A stretch of 57,680 bases of DNA, the filler included, from Platydemus manokwari (Eukaryota): the NCBI GenBank assembly GCA_037951405.1. It is 5 parts of 5 records of this genome, joined end to end, with 100 filler letters (N's around TTAATTAATTAA, not from the genome) between each part and the next. Parts side by side here need not be neighbours in the genome. Positions count along the whole stretch, not along the records: positions 1 to 11,540 come from JBBMOY010611105.1; 4 more parts are not named here. The stretch is one strand, 5' to 3'. The translations under genes were made by a program, and so were the position numbers. Positions within the stretch are counted from its first letter, which is position 1; the number at the start of each line of letters is the position of its first letter. This document shows, in pieces, positions 1 through 11,540 of this stretch. Under the pieces are notes generated by a model. It was not told the DNA's origin, searched no databases, and worked only from the letters and a program-made list of their open reading frames with translations.

Positions 1-105
1 TTCAAATGGTCTTTACTTTGAAACTTAATTGTTTTCCATTTGTTGTAAAATTATGTTTAAATTTTTAATAAAAAATTCGGAAAGAACTTTTGGTTCACCC
101 TAATA
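1..105 (+). mobile_element. 3' end of a mariner-type DNA transposon (transposase tail plus right TIR)
   Basis: 2-28 reads S-N-G-L-Y-F-E-T-stop, resembling the mariner C-terminus (NGxYF[E/D]). The segment ends in ...GAAAGAACTTTTGGTTCACCCTAATA, whose reverse complement TATTAGGGTGAACC resembles a mariner TIR with TA. A near-identical copy lies at 33757-33832. Confidence 0.75.
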
Positions 106-119
106 ATATATGTTTTAAT

Positions 120-1343
120 AATATCACGCTGGTAGGTCAGCAAATCAACAGTGTTATATCTCTATTAAACAATTTCATAGTTCGCTGGTTAGGGTTAAAT
201 ATTTTGATTCGCAGGAGCATCAGTAACTGGTATGAAGGCCGAGTTACTGGAAATTGAGTTAGTTCAATAAAAGGTCTGTTTGACAGAGGAACTGATGCTG
301 CTCTGGCCTGAAATAATTGAATTATGAATGACTGCCCAAGTTGGCACAAACAATGATATCCAAGATTTACGCCTCAAGAATATTTTTCTGATGACTCGCA
401 ATGCACCTTTCTAACCGATCTTACGAGTTTGTAGTAATAATCAAGGAGTAGTTACCTCACTGGATGCAATAATATTTATTTAAGAAAATACAAAAACAAC
501 AATTGATATGAATAAATACAAAATAAATAAATCCAATTGCTAGTACCTTACCTAAGCATTAACCAGCAAATCCTTAAGACGGATGAAGCAAAGGTTAGTA
601 AATTTAGGAGATGTTAATTATCAACACAATAGGTTAAATTATTAATAAATTAACTAATGATTATGAATGGGAAAGAATATTTAACAAAAAATAAACGAAC
701 CCTTACTATTGTCCTAATTCGTGTTGCAAAACAGTATTGATGCTAATCCGCGCCTGCTCCTGCTTGAGAATGACGAAAATTAACTCCTTTGGCTTTTTTC
801 AGACAAAAAATTTTGGTGAAATGGCTTCGCTTCGATATTTACCAATGATTTAATTATCTGTGTAGAGATTTGTCGTGAATAGCTAAACGAGAAAGTTGAA
901 TTGACCACAAATGATTAATATTACTATAGATTGCACTGATGAGTTTCAGTTTGCTGTCCGTCTATCGATTTGTGTTAGTGGTGCTTGGCTGAATCTCATC
1001 ACAATATTTATTGGCTCTTACGTCCTTACGCCCACGTCTACGTGATTTGTCGACCTTATTATTCAGCTAATTATGATAATTATTTCATTGTTACCAGTAA
1101 TTAATAACCTTGTTATATATTTATTTATTTTATCTTATTTCTGATATTTGCAATTTTTTTAGGCTAATAATTAATAAACTTTTATATATTTTTTTATTTT
1201 AACCATGTGAATTTCTTTATGGTTGAAATTTACAATTCGTTAATTACCTCCTCTTACTTATTTATATATCTTTTATTGATTTATTTTTCTCTAAATTAAT
1301 AATTTTCCAGTGTCGATAACCACTTCCCACATTTACCTCCTTT
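120..1343 (-). mobile_element. Probable 3' LTR of a Gypsy-like element with its polypurine tract
   Basis: On the minus strand AAAGGAGGTAAA (1343-1332) is followed directly by TGTGGGAAG (from 1331). An AT-rich U3-like tract and a hairpin-rich non-coding region follow. The far boundary is approximate. Confidence 0.5.
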
Positions 1344-1429
1344 ATTCTGCTTTTTATACAAACAGATTCCAAAATTAAAATATAATCAAACACGATAATT
1401 TTACAGATTATTGATTATATTAAAGTTAC

Positions 1430-2580
1430 ATTAAAAGGTACATCACAACATCTACACAAAATCATAATTATTGTCAAAATGGCCATACATGATAGGCACA
1501 ATATCACAAAGGACACAATATCATTGTTATACTGTTATTTGTGGAGACGATCACCAGGGATTTGCTGTTTCATGTTGAGGATTGATGAATTGATCGATGT
1601 TGTTGTTATTCCTTGCTCAGGTTCTTTGCTCGAATATCCAGAATCAAGATGTTGTTTATCTTATTGGGTTGGTGTTTGTTTTTTGTAAATAACTAGGTGT
1701 TTGCTGACTATGTACTCGTGGCTTTGTCATGGTAAATAACTATATGTTGGTAATTGTAGTGTATTTTGTAGTGGCTGGTACCATCAGCATCTCTGTAATG
1801 AACTATTTTGAGGTAAAATATTTGCTCAACAACTTCACAGTTTGTATGTTTTATTGATTATCCACGTAAAACATTTTACGGATTCCTTGTAGTTTTAATA
1901 TTAATTAATTTCATAATGTTGACCTTTATCTATTACTTTCAACTTGAAAAAAAAAATAAAAATTATAATCAAACAAACAATAGAAGCATATTATGTTTTC
2001 AGAAAAAACATTTTATTTTATTCATTTTGGTTGATGAGTAGGAAGTTCTAATATAGTTTAATGACTAAAACTAAATGTTAATGATTATCGCCGTAACGAG
2101 AATGTCAATTATTTTTGGTAATTGACGCAAGCTTATATTTTTTATGAGCGCTAATGAACCAATACAAAATATAGTACCAAAATTTATTTTCAATGCAAAT
2201 AAATGGTCAGATCAATTAATTACCAATTGTGGATAGAATGCTTGAGGAAATATCAATTTGACAATCAATAATGTGTTGTTCAGAAAAATTGAAGGTTACA
2301 AAACTGTATCATATTTCGATTGATCTTTAATTTCTCTAGTTTCCGTTGAACTTGTTGGTTTTTGTAAACGCGGGATTTGTCAAATTCCTATATGTGTGTT
2401 ACTGCATGGTAATATCTCTTTTTCAAGTTATCATTATCCGTCTAAATTTGCCGTGACTAGTTGATTGCTATTCCTGTATGATTGTGTAGAAATGCAAATG
2501 ATTAAAGTGCTAAAACAAGGGTTTCAAAGTACAAAACGGTTTTTGTTTTGCAAGATTTCGACTCGACTCAACACAACTAT
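1430..2580 (-). pseudogene. Decayed membrane-protein (env-like or accessory) ORF upstream of the PPT/LTR
   Basis: Broken frames give LSRVEILQNK..NPCFSTLIICISTQSY.., then a Thr-rich stretch and a C-terminal hydrophobic helix IVSFVILCLSCMAILTIIMIFV. Homologous pieces occur at 2630-2830, 12380-12770 and 40600-40900. Confidence 0.4.
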
Positions 2581-2629
2581 ACTAATCAGTACATGTATTA
2601 ACAATTTCAAAATTAATTAAAAATATGCC

Positions 2630-2830
2630 ACAAATCAAATACAAAAATGTATTGAGATTGACCAATTTCACACATGCAAAATTTTAAAAACCCAATAAGA
2701 ACATCGAAAAGCAAAGATCGAATCAGAATGTGATATAGCATGACATAAAAAATTACACACAGATTTCGAATATAAATATCTATTTAAAGATGGCCAACTG
2801 CTAGTTGGAAGCCAAGTTTTGTTAATACTT
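2630..2830 (+). pseudogene. Inverted fragment of the same Cys-containing ORF family
   Basis: Nucleotide similarity to the reverse complement of 12380-12560 (GAGATTGACCAAT..CCCAATAAGAACAT..AAGATGG.CAACTGC..AAGCCAAGTTT). Confidence 0.5.
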
Positions 2831-3459
2831 TGTAAAGTAAGTCAGATGTAATTACTTGTAAGTCGTACTGATAAGTACGCGATTGTAATACAGTTCTAGC
2901 CTTCTATTTTTGGATTCAGAGATTAGTTAATTGTCAAGGAGGATCCAACAATATAATAACCATAAAAATAATTGGATAAAAATAGCATTAATAAATTCTT
3001 ATTATAGAATAAAAATAAAAACAAAGAAAACAATTGATCAGTAAATAGATCAAAAGAATCGAAACGAAACTAAAATTGCCTTTTATCAAATCCAAATAAT
3101 GGTAGAAGTTTAAGAACCTCAATTGTTTCCGATAAATTCGTCAACTACTAAGGCTTGTGGATCATAATCAGACAAACTATTCTTATCATATATCCGATAA
3201 ATCATCATCTTACAAAACTCATCTTGATAAAGGAATCATTGTTAGCCCGAAACAATCGTTTATTATAAAATCCCCGTTAACTAAACATTGTATTTGACTT
3301 ACAAGCGTTTAATCTGAAGATTTATTAAAAATAATTCATTGATTCAAAACCCCACATTTTTTAAATATGTTTTCTTGTTTTATTTTGGTTCGTAAAGAGT
3401 TTCGGTAACAAATATTGAGGAAATAAAATTAAGATTTATTATTCATAAGAATAGCAGAT

Positions 3460-3900
3460 GGCAGAAGTCTTCAAGTCACCTTTTAAATTGAATTCCTAAA
3501 ATTGTTGTTTCTGAGATTCTGATTCGATATTTCTTCATTTGAAGTCTTCTCGTTCGGTTTTACAACATTGCCAAATAGCTCTGTTATACACTTGTTGTAT
3601 GTTGCGTTCTGTTTTTTCTTAACAGTTGAGCATGCGATGATTGCGGTCTCTGCCTTATATAGGCCACTGCGAGTCATTCGCAGATATTCTCTACTGATAT
3701 TTAATTTCCATTGTATATATGTTATACTGGAATTTATTGTGGCAGTGAGAAACTCTTTGAAATTAGTTCTACCATGTCAGAGAGAAATTCTCTGAGAATA
3801 AATGCATGAGGATTATTTTATTCGGCACGATTATTTTTTAGAATTTATTAAGCGCGATAACTATTTGTTTATAATTAATGACGGGTTTTTATTTATTATA
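3460..3900 (-). mobile_element. LTR promoter (U3/R) fragment, same family as the LTR at 49159
   Basis: The reverse complement shares AAAACCCGTC, AGAGAATTTCTCTC, AATATCTGCGA.TGA.TC and GCCTATATAAGGCAG (TATA box at ~3655-3661) with 49390-49675. Confidence 0.7.
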
Positions 3901-4039
3901 AAAGTTATTATTTAGATTTAATTTGTATTGTATTTTATTTCAGTTGATAATAAAACTCTGAATTTCTCATGAAATATTCAATACTACTTTTGATGAATAG
4001 ATATTTTTATACATACAATAAATATTGTACATTGACACA

Positions 4040-4205
4040 TATAGGGTTTTTTAAGTTTTAAAATAAATTTTGCACAATTTAAGATAATTATTTACATGAA
4101 TAAGAGAAATATTATTTGAAAATATTATTTAAACAATTCTCTTATTCATGTAAATAATTATCTTAAATTGTGCAAAATTTATTTTAAAACTCAAAAAACC
4201 CTATA
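4040..4205. mobile_element. Palindromic MITE/foldback element
   Basis: 69-bp inverted arms (4040-4108 and 4137-4205) with one mismatch and a 28-nt spacer. The ends TATA-GGG...CCC-TATA are consistent with a TA target duplication. Confidence 0.8.
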
Positions 4206-4601
4206 AATGTAGGTTTGTTATCATTGTCCTAAAATGGGTTCGGATTTACCAGCTTTGTCATAAATATTAACGAATTACAAATTAATTGATTTTGAACCAA
4301 ATTCTTTATATTTGTTGAATCTTTTTAATTTCGAATTCTAAGATAGAACCAATTTTCATTAAAAATTCATGAATTTTTAAATATAAAAAATAGAAATTTT
4401 ATGGTTTAGTTAAATTAATTATTGTTTAATAAAGAAATATATTGAAATATTTATGTAAAAATAATATTTCCATGTTTCCTTGATTATGAAATTTAATTAA
4501 CGTATATAGATTTATAAATAGCTTTAATTTGTTTATATATATCAAATATAATACTTTTTTATAAATTTTCAAAAATCTTGTTAATTTCTCTTGAATAAAC
4601 A

Positions 4602-5834
4602 ATGACTAGTAGCAAAACTTCTAATAACTACAACAGACAAAATTGGGAGCAATCAGTAAGTTTAGATATTAGTAATTAATTTATTATTTGGAATAACTAG
4701 GATTTCCCAATTGTATGTGAAACATGTTTAGGTGATAATTCTTTTCTTCGAATGACGAAGGAACCTTATGGGAAAGAATGTAAAATTTGTCAAAGACCTT
4801 TTACAATATTTCGTTGGCAACCTGGTTGTAAAGCAAGATTTAAAAAAACGGAGGTTTGTCAAGTTTGTGCGAAAACTAAAAATGTCTGTCAAACGTGTAT
4901 TTTGGACTTAGAATATGGACTTCCTGTACAGGTTAGAGACAATGCTCTGAAAATAAATCAGAATCTACCTCGAGGTAGTGTAAACCGTGAATATAATCAA
5001 CAGCAACTGGAGCAAGTGATGTCAACTAGTAGAGATGTAACAGCTCCCTATGGGGGTTTAGATGTCACTGGTAAAATAAGAAACAACGATATGTTATTGA
5101 AATTAGCAAGAACTGAGCCGTATTATCGACGTAATCGACCACATATATGTTCATTTTATGTAAAAGGTGAATGTAAAAGAGGAGAAGAATGTCCATTTAG
5201 ACACGAAAAGCCAACCGATCCTGATGATCCTTTATCGAATCAAAATATTAAAGATCGATTTTATGGATTGTCAGATCCAGTTGCACATAAGTTGCTGGAT
5301 AAATATAAGAGTATGCCTCAATTAAGTCCACCAGAAGATAAATCAATAACAACTCTTTATATTGGGGGTGTTCCTGAATCAATCGGAGAAAAAGAATTGA
5401 AAGATCGCTTTTACCAATATGGTGAACTTCGATCAGTGACAGTTTATCAGCGTCAGCGTTGTGCATTTGTCCAATTTGCAACTCGTGATGCTGCTGAAAG
5501 AGCTGCTGAAAAGAGCTACGATAAATTGATTATGGCTGGACAAAGACTGACTGTAAATTGGGGTAAAGCTCAACTTCAGAGCGAAATCGAGCATAATAAA
5601 CAAAATAATAAAGCCCTTCCAAGTGTACCGGGCTTACCGCCAGTTGTCATGACTTTCCCACCACCGCCTATTGCTTATAATTGGCCATTGATACCTGCAC
5701 ATTTCAATGCAATTAATTCAGCTGCTGTGATTCCCCCACCTCCCCCGCCACCAATGGTAAGTAGTAGCAATGATTCACGTCTGGGAGTGCACTATCCAAG
5801 CCAAGATCCCAACAGATTTGGTGCTGCTAAATGA
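4602..5834 (+). CDS. RBM22: Pre-mRNA splicing factor RBM22 (Cwc2/Slt11-like), 2 exons: 4602-4655 and 4701-5834, 395 aa
   Basis: Exon 1 [18 protein letters not shown] joins through a 45-nt GTAAGT..TAG intron to [21 protein letters not shown]. The protein has the N-terminal Cys-rich STL11-type region, a CCCH finger ([19 protein letters not shown]), an RRM (TLYIGG..CAFVQF) and a Pro-rich tail ending HYPSQDP. Confidence 0.97.
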
Positions 5835-6899
5835 GAAACTATGTAAATAAATAATTTTCAAATATCTTTATTATCTCCTAATTGATTAAATTAGGCCATA
5901 TTTTCAATAAATTGGATGTCTTTATTCAGGGTGGGGTTATAAATTTCACATCACAATTATTCTACTATTATTTATCATGCTTGATCCTTTCCTGATATAA
6001 CCACACAAATTGGGTCATTGTTGCCTCGAAGGACTTGTTTTTAGTATATTTGTTTGATTTAATTAGTGTTCTTATTTTTTACTAATTTTTTTATTTTAAC
6101 AATTTAAGAAATTTTGATTTTGGTCATAAAAACTTAGCTTGAAATCGAATAAGATTTGTATATTTGTTATAAATTGATGTTTAAATATTAAAATAGAAAA
6201 ACACTACATGATTAATTTATAAACTGAATTAAGTTAGACTTTCAATAATTTTACCTGAACTTTGTTTAAAACTGAATAACTGTGTAATCTGATTCGATGT
6301 AAGTCGAATATTTCCATTTTATTATGTTTGGCGATTTGCCTAGTAATACGAATAAAAATATTGCTCTTTACTGTGTAAACTTTCCGAAAAATATGTTATT
6401 TACATTGCATTGAAAACTACAGATTTGAGTTATCAAAATAATTGCTATGTGATTTAGTAGTTCGAATTAATATGTCACGAGTATGCATTATAAAAAGTCG
6501 CCTAAACAGGGATCTTCTTAACGTGTTGGAGGAATTCCTCATGGCGGCTTAATGAAAATTTAATACTGGCTTTTATTGGAGGTTACCTGTTTGGACTGGA
6601 AATCTTTTTATTTGACGAGAATACTGTACTGGTGCGGTCTAAGTGAAAGTGTAGGAAAGTAAATGTAAACAAATGTTAGAGCTCGGGCCAGTTCAATAAT
6701 ACTCTCAAAAACAAAATTTACAAAGCCAGTATATTTCAAATATATTTATGTTACAAATCCAGTCTTTGAAATGCAACTCCAGTGAACTTCAAATCTATTT
6801 TCATTTTTCAACTTCAAAACATTGATATAATAATTAAAATAATAAGAGATAAAGTGCTGAGAAAGTTTATTAATCCAGTTAAATATCTACAATAAAATG

Positions 6900-7140
6900 C
6901 AAAAAATATGATCAATAAACATGGTTAATTACCATAAAATGAGATATCAAGCAAGGATTGCCCACGCCGCCAACGCAACAAAATTAACATAAATAGTGGC
7001 AGGATTAACCATCGAACCACATACAACTTCACACTTGCAATATATTAGCACAAATTAGTACAAAAAGAAACACTGCAATACACAATCGAAAGGCTATCAT
7101 CAAGAATGTTGGCGACATAAATTATCAGTACATGCATTCA
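6900..7140 (+). pseudogene. Possible decayed gag fragment with a zinc-knuckle remnant
   Basis: KKKHCNTQSKGYHQECWRHK resembles a degenerate gag knuckle; the surrounding frames are broken. Confidence 0.3.
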
Positions 7141-10021
7141 TCAATTAATTCATCAATGTGAACGTCAACCGCGGATCTTTTGGTAACAGTTACAAAGCAG
7201 ATTTTTGAGTAATTAGAAATTTCGTGGAAAATTAACTTTTCGGATAGAAGTGAAATTAGTTATCCTTTTGCATTTAGTAATTATAATTTAATCTCTGATA
7301 CGTCATTAAAGTAAATGAAATTTAATTATTAAAATGATAATAATTTAAAAGATTTTTACAATGACATTTTGAATTCATGCCACATATCTTCTTCGTCAGC
7401 TTCGGACATTCGGTAACCCACTTATCTGATGCATCTTTTTTTATCTTCATTTTTCATTTTAATTGTATTTTAGGTTATTCTTCTTGATATAATAATCATA
7501 AACAGTTTTATATCAATTGTTAGTTGTGATTTAGAACAATATTAAATTGAATTATTTATTAGTTAAATTATTTTAATCAAAATTTACCTTTGTTGCATTT
7601 AGTCTAATTGCACTCAGTGCTCTACTATTAAATTTAAAACCAAAGTATAGATAACAATTCGCCGATAGTATTACCGAAACCGCTGGAAACCATAAATAAA
7701 ACCAGTACAATATTTAATGTAACTGTAGGGTGTTATCTGAATTTTCATATAAATTTTGGTTATATATTACTTGATATCATGAGTTCTTGATTACGGATGC
7801 TAGCGTAATGAACCTAGTTATTATTTTATTCTTAACCCCGCATAAATGAACTATATGCTGACAATAAGTGCGGAAACAGTGATGTAACTGTTACTAATCC
7901 AATTTTTAGTAAACCTGCTGGCACTGCTGGCAATGAACTAATGATTAATGATATTTTTATCAAATTATGATTAATGACCAACATTGCTTACTGCTACAAA
8001 TGTTAATACCGATACATATTAACACCAAATAAAATGATAAAACTACAATTGAATTTAATGTTACTAGACGACAATTATAAGGCCGACATACAATTCCTAG
8101 CTAAAGTTTATTGTAAATAAGCTCCACTCTGTTGAAGCAAAACCTTTACTTTTAAGATAGTGAGACAATGCTCGATAAGTATTATAAATGTCTTGTAATA
8201 CTAATACTATTTTACGTGAATATGCTCTACTGTTGATCTTCTAGTTGAATACTGGGCATATACAGATTCCCAATCGCCGACAAGAAATGGTTTTCCATCT
8301 GCTGGAAAGTAATCATCGTAGTATTGTATTATATTGTTATGGTTTTGTTACTTACCTAACAAAAGGCTTCAATAGCAAGTATTGAAGACTATACTATCGA
8401 AAAAAATCATCTAAATGATTTTTCTCAAATTTATAACTCACATTAAATGCAACTAAGACTGAATATGTTATTATTCGTTTTTCTCCAAATAGAATTAGAT
8501 TATTAAAACTGTTTATGGTGTAGCTTTATACTTGTACTCTACAATGTTTATATAAAAATTATAAATAAATTATTGGTTAAAAACTTTTATTTTTAGAAAT
8601 TGAAAAATAAACAAACAGTAAAACTAAGTAAAATTATTAATAGAATTCAATACCAGATGAGTCACGAAAGTGATTTATCGGTAGCCCAAGAGGATGGATA
8701 AGAAAATAATATTTGTTAATTAAATATGATGGAAATATTAATATTAAAATTATTGACATGGAAAACTGGTTGGGTACATGACACGTGAAATAATTACTAT
8801 TTTCGCTTTAGTTCACGAATAAAGATCCTCAAATCCTGAAGAACTTGATTAACACTAAATCAGCAAAAAGATGTATTTCTTAGCTACAACTGGCTCTGGT
8901 TCACTCGATAATTGAAAAGATAACGATACTGATTCACAATACTATTCTGTTGGGGAAATGAAAAATTCAGCCGAAACACAATAACAATTCTTGACAATTG
9001 ACAGTCATGCCTGATGGTATTTGTTTTTAGTGTAACAATTTTGTGTATAAAAGTATTAATTTTTATCTATGCGTTTTTTTGTAACAATGTAGTTACTATT
9101 TTTAGAGCTTGATCATTCAAGCGTTGTTAAATGTAACAAATTTTTGAAAAGCTTGATTAATCAAGCAGTGTATTTTATTTTATTATATTTTATTTTATTT
9201 GTCGAATCAAGCTTCTGACTGAATTTCAATTAAAATAATGATAATAATAATTATGATAATGATAATAATTGTTGTTAATAGATAATTACGGTTAATGGAT
9301 ATTTCTTTTTACACCTTTTAAGACTAAGAATAAAAATAATATTGAATTATTTATATTCCATCAATATATTATCGCAAGCAAATTTTATTTTGAACAAATT
9401 ATGGGGAAATCCTTAGGGAATTAATTTATCTGTATCAATTTTCGCCAATAATCCGTGACGATTAAATTCGTCTCCCGATTCGTATAAATAGGGGGAAAAA
9501 CGTCACAATCTTCGCCCGTTTTATTCTGAAACCACTAGCTCGTAGTGTGTTACAACCAAATCGTGTGAAGTCGTATTTTTATTCAAGCCATTCTGCTCGT
9601 TGTCGGATCCTGATCTATATTTGCGCCAATAAGAATCATACAAGCCTTTAGTTCAAGTATATGCCCTACGATACGTGAGTTAGATTAATTCTATAAACAA
9701 CTAATCGGTAGTATAGTAGTCGTGTATATTGTCCTATTGTAGAGTTTTATCTCAAACGTCTTGAAAGATGGTTTTGCTGCAAGAGTGTGCAGTCTATTAA
9801 CCGTAAATCTTCCCCAGAAGCTTGATAAGGTTGTTCGTTGTTTTGTATTGAAATTGTATTTAACCATATTAGTTTTGTAGTAATTTATATAATTGTTACG
9901 TAATATTCGTGTTAATAAACTTTTATAAAACACTAGTTTGTTATTAAATTTATAGTTATTGTTTAATTGAGACTGATAGAATAGTTGTTAACATAGGTAT
10001 AGAGATAGTTTTATTAATAAT

Positions 10022-10155
10022 TGATCATTGTTGCCGTTTGGTATTATCTTCATATAGTATTGAACGCGAGGCGAAAATAATTATAAATAGGTTCAATAGT
10101 TCGTACCTAGGGCTTGATCAGAACCACGAGAGACTGATTAAGACAACAGTGATCA
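10022..10155 (+). ncRNA. Structured cis-RNA element, copy 1
   Basis: Outer helix 10022-10033/10144-10155, hairpin CTTGATCAG/CTGATTAAG and AGG/CCT pairing, all covarying with copies 2 and 3. Confidence 0.6.
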
Positions 10156-10217
10156 TCAACAATAATAGTAAATAAGAGACTGATAAGATTAAGATTGGTA
10201 AGAAGAATAATATTTTT

Positions 10218-10350
10218 GGATCATTGTTGCCAATCATATTATCTTTATATAGAATTGATTTCGAGGTGAATAAGATAGCAATAAGGTTTTATAGATTGTA
10301 CCTTGGGCTTGATTAGGACTGATAGAGACTGATCAAAACAACGGTGATCC
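10218..10350 (+). ncRNA. Structured cis-RNA element, copy 2 (tandem with copy 1)
   Basis: Outer helix 10218-10229/10339-10350 with two G-U pairs; TTGATTAG/CTGATCAA hairpin; AGGTG/TACCT pairing. Confidence 0.6.
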
Positions 10351-10564
10351 ACAATAGTTGATAACATTTTTGAGACTGATTAAAACAAAATAAATTAATA
10401 AAGCCCAAAACACATCAGTTTTATTGTTCGCTGTTTTCTTCATTTTTCTTAAATAAATTTTTATAACCGACCATCGCATTCTTAATAATTACAACTTCAA
10501 TGATTATTGATTTATTAACTATTAATATATTATTTTGTACGTATAGTGTAAACCAGTTGTTACA

Positions 10565-10720
10565 ACGGGACCATTAATTCCTCATTGTAACAATCAATCT
10601 AATTTCAATATGATTTCCAATAGCTTCGTCTTCATACGAGATATCGAAGTCCTCATACCACCAGCACCACAGTAAAATAACAAAAACCATCCATAACAAT
10701 ATGAAAATCTGCTATTCATA
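10565..10720 (-). pseudogene. Weak BIR-like zinc-finger relic, antisense to the adjacent LTR promoter
   Basis: Across frameshifts it reads MNSRFSYCYGWFLLFYCGAGG / YEDFDISYEDEAIGNHIEI / DCY, loosely matching the BIR pattern GF...CxxC...H...C. Confidence 0.3.
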
Positions 10721-11540
10721 ACAATAAATATAAAAAATACAAATCAAATATTGCATACTCGTCAAAATACTCATAAATATTTCTGTTCTGCTTTTTTCGT
10801 TTCTTCTTGCAATGTATTTTCTAATTTTATATTTTTATTTTTAAATTTTATTCTTTTAATTTCTTCTTTTAACACTTAAAATTTCCCTTAAAAATTTCTC
10901 TTTATTTTTTTGCTTTTTACTACTTAATTTAGTATGGCGCTTTCTCCGGAAACGTATATGATCGCGAATAATAATCAATTTCAATTTTAAACGAATTTTT
11001 CTTAAGTTTCCCTTTCCTTCACTCAGAAATGGAAGTTTTTAAATCCATTTATTTATTAAAACCATGCAAATCTATATGCCCAGCACTCATTAGTAGCTTC
11101 TTCAGTTTTTGATTCATACATTTTAGAGTTAGACTCTTTTATCAGTTTTAATTCCTCGCTGATTTGTTGGGTTCCTAAATCTGTTTTAGATTATCTTGCT
11201 TGATTTACTGTAGTTGCAATATCTCGAGCAATTACTGGTGGTCCACCTTAATCTGCTATTATTGCTGATAATGGTGAAAGAAAAACTCCCTCAGATTTTA
11301 TAATTTTCTAATTTTGTTTACTTTCAATTATTTAGTTTAAATCATTAACATTTTTTAAATAAATATATTTTATATACAATCATTATATTCAAATGACTTT
11401 GGTTTAACATGTTTAAAATTTTTCTGTAAATTGTTTTCTACCACCTTTTTATTAATTAATTTTTATTTTTATTTTATTTTATTTGATTTTTATAATTCAA
11501 TTTAATATATATATTTATTTAAATAATTGGAGTTAAATAT

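Follow-up and report, generated by a model that had tools for sequence, protein, structure and literature searches.

Can two neighbouring copies of a tandem repeat, long diverged from each other, testify to selection on RNA pairing, and what kind of RNA would they encode? The question is raised by a locus of the flatworm Platydemus manokwari (GCA_037951405.1) within a window of 57,680 nt, filler included, which is the whole stretch of DNA analysed; the piece carrying the locus spans its first 11.5 kb (positions 1 to 11,540, from JBBMOY010611105.1) and has a GC content of ~29%. A first-pass annotation had described here a tandem pair of RNA folds in the leader of an LTR element. The two neighbouring copies are indeed present in the sequence, arranged in tandem with a period of 195 nt, and a repeat search aligned 10042-10159 with 10237-10354 at 75% identity. 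Our comparison set was limited to these two sequences (n = 2; copy A, 10022-10157, and copy B, 10218-10352), leaving out a third copy quoted by that annotation; over their full length 100 of 136 columns agree (74% identity).

The RNAalifold consensus of the two copies is a four-way junction with 39 pairs, and the domain is probably a junction of this kind, ~135 nt long, in which the predicted outer helix P1 (11-12 bp) closes the three hairpins P2, P3 and P4 (Table 1). The outer 12-bp helix of the original description was recovered in both copies (A, 10022-10033 / 10144-10155; B, 10218-10229 / 10339-10350), its first pair changing from U-A to G-C, and so was the side hairpin (A, 10113-10121 / 10134-10142; B, 10309-10316 / 10329-10336), where two positions alternate between G-U and Watson-Crick pairs. 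Both helices, P1 and P4, are robust in the folding models. The 5' arm of P4 begins with GCTTGAT in both folds, P4 holds the internal 9-mer GAGACTGAT, and the invariant RNA motif GAGACUGAU, a loop or single-stranded element that lies in the P4 loop and 3' arm, recurs ~21 nt downstream of each domain; copy B carries an extra GACTGAT at 10317-10323. The central part of the domain is predicted with varying strength. The AGG/CCT helix forms a hairpin in both copies, as had been proposed, but its pair probability is moderate (0.67 in copy A and 0.35 in copy B), and P3 is graded accordingly as a moderate prediction, whereas P2 is strong in copy A only. The short GCC/GGC helix at the base of P2 is weak, with a pair probability of just 0.11 in copy A and 0.00 in copy B, and this element of the annotated fold was not borne out. 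When copy B is folded alone its own minimum free energy (MFE) structure prefers a private alternative for the central part, and in a 481-nt context the MFE structure retains fold A but displaces P1 of fold B. An additional helix crossing AGG/CCT had also been considered; our pseudoknot search in copies A and B found no helix of at least 4 bp between unpaired columns common to both, and the pseudoknot is therefore unsupported. On the other hand, the motifs CGAGG and AGAGACTGAT, annotated as invariant, are so in both copies.

Table 1. Coordinates of the folds, their predicted helices and the associated sequence motifs, counted along the window.
Feature	Position	Strand	Remark
Fold A	10022..10157	+	MFE -37.1; 159.7 bits to covariance model
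Fold B	10218..10352	+	MFE -36.1; 155.5 bits to covariance model
P1 (outer helix), fold A	10022-10032(33) / 10145(44)-10155	+	pair probability 0.97
P1 (outer helix), fold B	10218-10228(29) / 10340(39)-10350	+	pair probability 1.00
GCC/GGC (base of P2), fold A	10033-10035 / 10070-10072	+	pair probability 0.11, weak
P2 (long hairpin), fold A	10036-10047 / 10054-10065	+	pair probability 0.96
P2, fold B	10232-10242 / 10249-10260	+	pair probability 0.13; feasible, disfavoured
P3 (AGG/CCT hairpin), fold A	10088-10094 / 10103-10109	+	pair probability 0.67
P3, fold B	10283-10289 / 10298-10304	+	pair probability 0.35
P4 (side hairpin), fold A	10114-10121 / 10134-10141, plus 10113/10142	+	pair probability 0.89
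P4, fold B	10309-10316 / 10329-10336	+	pair probability 0.83
CGAGG	10067-10071 (fold A), 10262-10266 (fold B)	+	invariant
GAGACTGAT, first copy, 45 nt before fold A	9969..9977	+	exact match
GAGACTGAT, inside fold A	10130-10138	+	exact match
GAGACTGAT, between folds, 21 nt past P1 end of fold A	10176..10184	+	exact match
GAGACTGAT, inside fold B	10325-10333	+	exact match
GAGACTGAT, 22 nt past P1 end of fold B	10372..10380	+	exact match
AATAAA strings after last GAGACTGAT	10389-10394, 10397-10402	+	string match
Candidate repeat unit carrying the folds (largest extent, bounds uncertain)	9031..10564		TGTAACAA at edges
Palindrome GCTTGA-tcat-TCAAGC	9107-9122		upstream ~50-nt unit
Perfect 16-mer palindrome on GCTTGAT	9151-9166		upstream ~50-nt unit

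That the fold is specific to one strand is a direct observation. Folded singly on the + strand, copies A and B reach -37.1 and -36.1 kcal/mol (z = -3.49 and -3.36, respectively, with 0 of 200 shuffles as good in either case), and on the - strand -29.4 (z = -2.4) and -20.7 (z = -1.05). In the consensus fold all 78 pair cells are standard pairs and none is broken, and pairing survives in all 15 paired columns that changed, through four double changes and seven single changes to or from G-U; the double-changed pairs lie in P1 (one), at adjacent positions of P2 (two) and in P3 (one). The energy of the shared fold is -30.3 kcal/mol with a structure conservation index of 0.83 on the + strand, the corresponding figures on the - strand being -13.9 and 0.55. 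Two null models, in which the structure was re-derived each time, were set against these values: shuffling columns within conservation classes gave -10.4 ± 3.0 (z = -6.5; 0 of 500 reached -30.3), and simulating neutral mutation, with the observed 35 substitutions at random sites, gave -12.5 ± 3.6 and an index of 0.39, with 0 of 400 simulations reaching the observed shared-fold energy from either starting copy. These results uphold the claim that a multi-helix fold was kept on the + strand through sequence change, all changed pairs being preserved between copies A and B.

The structure of copy A alone is unbiased with respect to copy B. When it is taken as reference, copy B alters 14 of the 41 pairs of copy A, keeping 10 and breaking 4, against 11.1 pairs broken when substitutions fall on random sites (4 of 5000 as good) and 8.1 when the same sites receive random new bases (44 of 5000), that is, p of about 0.001-0.009. 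Support is weaker with copy B as reference (79 and 559 of 5000 as good; p = 0.016-0.11). Deviations within the helices, said to be mostly G-U on the + strand, amount to 11 G-U cells versus 1 A-C (binomial p = 0.006), and if G-U is forbidden the folds drop to -24.8 and -23.1, near the shuffled means of -25.05 and -24.41 that were obtained with G-U allowed. Columns that differ between the copies make up 15 of the 78 paired and 21 of the 58 unpaired ones (Fisher p = 0.03). With two rows, the pair-count shuffle test has a floor of 31 in 500. The pair was chosen in the first-pass annotation for its covarying look, and a look-elsewhere discount therefore applies to all these figures. The statistical signal for a shared fold, coming from two copies, is real.

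Outside the folds the two copies have little left in common. The spacers around them show 46% identity outside the 9-mer GAGACTGAT, versus 50 ± 5% for unrelated 52-mers of the same piece, and GAGACTGAT is the sole conserved block among the three spacers. The 9-mer has five exact matches in the 11.5-kb piece where 0.06 would be expected, all on the + strand: one in the interior of each fold, one at 21-22 nt past the P1 end of each fold and one at 45 nt before fold A, the latter being a remnant of a preceding spacer or of a partial unit. Since the spacers are at chance identity and the 9-mer is intact in five of five cases, neutral divergence must have reached saturation; the duplication is thus old, and the fold and the motif stand out as islands of conservation. 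The flanking 9-mer is in phase with the folds, which indicates that the whole 195-nt unit was duplicated. We also considered independent insertions of a MITE or foldback element, for which the 12-bp inverted ends are present, and discarded them on the lack of a target-site duplication at A or B.

The first-pass annotation had recommended a search of Rfam, and had itself failed to match the fold to hammerhead, HDV, twister or pistol cores. Rfam 15, searched at E ≤ 10 with the whole piece and with 9900-10450 (551 nt) alone, returned nothing relevant in the fold region, so that no known family was matched; this holds for the hammerhead and for HDV-like, twister, pistol and hatchet ribozymes as well as for exonuclease-resistant RNAs, and the search for a conserved pseudoknot, as noted for all of these but the hammerhead, was likewise negative. 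A hammerhead core pattern, which is a lead and no test, is absent from the whole piece. A tRNA or tRNA-derived SINE was rejected, ARAGORN reporting 0 tRNA genes in the piece and the unit being ~135 nt long with a 12-bp closing helix. A covariance model built from copies A and B recovered both of its input copies, at 159.7 and 155.5 bits, but no further copy in the piece, where the next-best score was 12.6 bits. Pattern scans of viral and genome contig collections gave 0 matches to the motif; four pattern matches in metagenome contigs were dismissed as chance (GC of 55-64%, no alignment). Exact look-ups of ORFs from the piece retrieved no record, and a protein word search with the 98-aa stop-free frame adjoining the folds gave no match. 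None of the RNA families described so far includes the motif, although its kind, that of structured cis-RNAs in repeat transcripts, is already known. The tandem element is probably a real, undescribed structured RNA, represented by two sequences.

Placement of the folds in an LTR leader found no support in the piece. A second LTR is missing both from the 9 kb upstream and from the 1.2 kb downstream, where the piece ends, and no direct repeat in the 11.5 kb is longer than the 118-nt tandem unit. Pfam searches with 20 stop-free frames, taken from both strands in the neighbourhood of the folds, detected neither a retroelement domain or gag/pol remnant nor a capsid or nucleocapsid gene, TG..CA ends with a target-site duplication were represented by chance-level candidates only, and no string resembling a primer-binding site was seen by eye after 10564. 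The TATA box reported upstream of the first copy corresponds to a TATA-like string at 9483-9491, 538 nt upstream of the folds, and is uninformative, as TATAAA occurs 47 times in the piece versus 41.6 expected. Similarly, AATAAA occurs 96 times in the piece and is therefore weak as a poly(A) signal. A retroelement origin of the dispersed repeat is plausible and unproven. The edges of the fold-bearing region carry the 8-mer TGTAACAA, found at 9031, 9080 and 9132 (+), in inverse form at 10557-10564 and again at 10586 (+), i.e. five times versus 1.05 expected, with matches nowhere else. Comparison of TGTAACAA and TTGTTACA at these edges revealed no convincing duplication and no similarity beyond the 8-mer. 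The TGTAACAA sites could possibly be TG..CA-type termini of a 1.4-1.5 kb unit; if the 8-mers do mark LTR-type ends, the folds would be internal to a unit of ~1.4-1.5 kb rather than part of a leader.

The surroundings of the folds show further sequence features. GCTTGAT occurs 10 times versus 1.25 expected, 7 of these within 9107-10313, and 9080-9170 consists of two ~50-nt tandem units, each with a GCTTGAT-based palindrome. AT-rich micro- and minisatellites (TATTT x6; 15- and 21-nt AAT/GAT units) occupy 9171-9200 and 9228-9269, separating the palindrome units from the TATA-like string. To the right of the folds, 10501-11500 has GC skews of -0.33 and -0.17 and negative AT skew on the + strand, which suggests a transcription unit on the - strand; Pfam searches with the short frames of this interval found no domain. 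Farther upstream, an intronless ORF of 360 aa at 4752-5834 (+) encodes the splicing factor RBM22 (STL11_N, CCCH zinc finger and RRM), its closest named relatives being flatworm proteins and its best match 88% identical; the profile match begins at position 16, so that a short upstream exon is likely. The inverted repeat at 4035-4210 (79-nt arms, 94% complementary, 18-nt loop) is a long AU-rich foldback, a MITE-like or hairpin-RNA locus, where plant miRNA families score below threshold only (e.g. MIR774, 32 bits versus a cut-off of 80). Finally, a stop-free frame at 1817-2038 (+) has a weak match to secretin-type 7TM receptors (E = 0.0096, below the Pfam cut-off) and might represent an exon of an adjacent receptor gene.

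How, then, is a conserved, strand-specific fold in a saturated repeat to be explained? The explanation that we tentatively prefer, at somewhat less than even confidence, is that the + strand encodes a cis-acting structured RNA domain, kept as old tandem duplicates, in which the 9-mer and the loops serve as repeated protein-binding sites. We infer that the + strand of the dispersed repeat would be read into RNA and that the fold would offer a repeated set of binding sites made up of GAGACUGAU and two conserved loops, CGAGG and UAUCUU; the putative partner would be a protein handling the transcript, either of the capsid or nucleocapsid type or an export or stability factor, after the model of the repeated packaging or transport elements of retroviruses, and duplication would raise avidity. 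The pair-preserving substitutions and the conservation islands behind this explanation are observed directly, and transcription, partner and function are the conjectural steps. Weighing against it are the small set of two copies, picked for their covarying look, the weaker support with copy B as reference, the disfavoured P2 and GCC/GGC of copy B, the displacement of the outer helix of fold B in the 481-nt context, TATA and poly(A) strings no commoner than expected by chance, the searches that found no relatives, and the absence of gag/pol, a second LTR or a primer site from the neighbourhood, which leaves a packaging or export role with no visible partner. The functions listed in the first-pass annotation (packaging, IRES, nuclease block or ribozyme) are guesses. 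It is rather improbable that the junction together with GAGACUGAU is the first known example of a so far undescribed family of structured RNAs in flatworm repeats, with an autonomous activity beyond that of a passive leader, e.g. as a new protein-recruiting module or a catalytic or processing fold.

Replication can, by template switching, create and maintain hairpins. The pair might accordingly be a neutral relic, namely a satellite or MITE-like foldback unit, with inverted ends of 12 bp, that was duplicated in tandem, its apparent compensation stemming from chance, from ascertainment or from the rewriting of arms by template switching, without selection on RNA. We regard this as doubtful but still deserving serious weight, for there are two copies only and the pair-count test has its floor at 31/500, support falls to p = 0.016-0.11 with copy B as reference, fold B is not robust in the 481-nt context, transcription signals are at chance level and no function-linked neighbours were found. 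Nonetheless, 0 of 400 neutral simulations reached the shared fold, the stems are 81% identical and never broken while the spacers are saturated, template switching yields Watson-Crick pairs and not a G-U/A-C asymmetry, and target-site duplications flank neither fold A nor fold B. Gypsy-type elements have leader repeats to which insulator or enhancer proteins bind, and GAGACTGAT and GCTTGAT could in the same way be sites for DNA-binding proteins. The locus would then be a regulatory tandem repeat comparable to those that serve as enhancers or insulators in the leader or U3 of insect LTR elements, and its hairpins would be a by-product of inverted sites. This would account for a 9-mer that is invariant within otherwise saturated spacers, for the excess of GCTTGAT (10 versus 1.25 expected, 7 in 9107-10313, with two forming perfect palindromes upstream) and for the ~50-nt tandem units upstream, but we hold it to be unlikely: protein sites in DNA are not expected to show pair-preserving double changes, only the + strand tolerates G-U wobble (11 versus 1 A-C), the shared fold of the - strand is far poorer (index of 0.55 versus 0.83) and all 9-mers have a single orientation. 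The strand asymmetry and the pair-preserving substitutions thus argue against both the regulatory DNA repeat and the neutral relic.

Flatworm genomes carry ribozyme-bearing repeats, and tandem units of ~195 nt that combine a compact core of several helices with loop nucleotides that never vary (CGAGG, AGAGAC) bring to mind a self-cleaving ribozyme or a retrozyme-like unit processing a multimeric transcript. The region of 551 nt nevertheless matched no Rfam ribozyme family at E ≤ 10, the hammerhead core pattern (again a lead and no test) is absent from the piece and there is no conserved pseudoknot; the absence of a known catalytic core argues against self-cleavage, which we judge very improbable, and the ribozyme idea of the first-pass annotation is left unsupported. 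Hardly any probability is likewise given to an array of small non-coding RNA genes (spliced-leader, Y/stem-bulge-like or similar) standing outside a longer transcript. The ends of each ~135-nt unit do pair together as in Y-type RNAs, the arrangement is tandem and GAG|GUGAAU in copy B resembles a splice donor, but Rfam gave no match to SL, Y or snRNA families, the single-stranded linker has no U-tract Sm-like site, no consistent T-run terminator follows both units, the donor-like position reads GC in copy A and there are two units only; the lack of terminators and of Sm-type sites thus argues against such an array. A mini-intron (donor-like CGAG|GY, branch-like CUGAU and AUAG| past each fold) was rejected on the same GC at the copy A donor, such strings being moreover common in DNA of 29% GC, and self-priming of the Tf1 type was discarded because the fold lies ~500 nt from any plausible transcript start and is duplicated.

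Among known systems, the closest to the preferred reading of a protein-binding cis-RNA are cis-RNAs that handle unspliced retroviral RNA (PMC5035971), namely the direct-repeat (DR) elements of Rous sarcoma virus and, in Mason-Pfizer monkey virus, the constitutive transport element (CTE). By analogy, DR and CTE and the flatworm motif would be alike as repeated structured cis-RNA units of ~100-150 nt that are duplicated by design. DR and CTE are thought to recruit host or viral proteins, a property in which the flatworm motif is likened to them by analogy only, and they sit in complete proviruses, whereas the flatworm motif has no visible retroelement genes or LTR pair; at the level of sequence or of Rfam (E ≤ 10) there is no similarity between them. 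Repetitive structural motifs also act as packaging signals in single-stranded RNA viruses (PMC8206606). Such packaging motifs and the retroviral psi regions, with their recurring short motifs for protein binding, may be compared to GAGACUGAU, a short invariant motif shown repeatedly, in loops or in single-stranded spacers, beside stable helices; unlike them, the flatworm case comes with no capsid or nucleocapsid gene in the piece, and GAGACUGAU might just as well act as DNA. The location of tandem units, each with its short invariant motif, downstream of a promoter-like part of a repeat is a feature shared with gypsy-type repeats, which act as DNA and have no conserved RNA pairing, whereas the flatworm substitutions preserve pairs on one strand only. 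Insect LTR elements of the gypsy type bear these tandem repeats, as insulator or enhancer sites, in their leaders or U3, and the 3' UTRs of flaviviruses contain duplicated exonuclease-resistant and dumbbell RNAs. The flavivirus elements are alike in being tandem, compact multi-helix RNAs whose sequence has diverged and whose fold is kept, but they need a pseudoknot around a three-way junction, and in the flatworm motif none is conserved and Rfam gave no match.

The genomes of flatworms have thin coverage in Rfam and harbour many giant, little-studied repeats. Should the fold fail in a larger alignment, the locus would be merely a tandem foldback repeat. As the case illustrates, a mere two tandem copies, if old and separated by saturated spacers, can be enough to expose selection on RNA pairing. 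A domain both real and widespread would constitute a new RNA family in the genomes of flatworms and would offer a handle on how the transcripts of their repeats are recognized.
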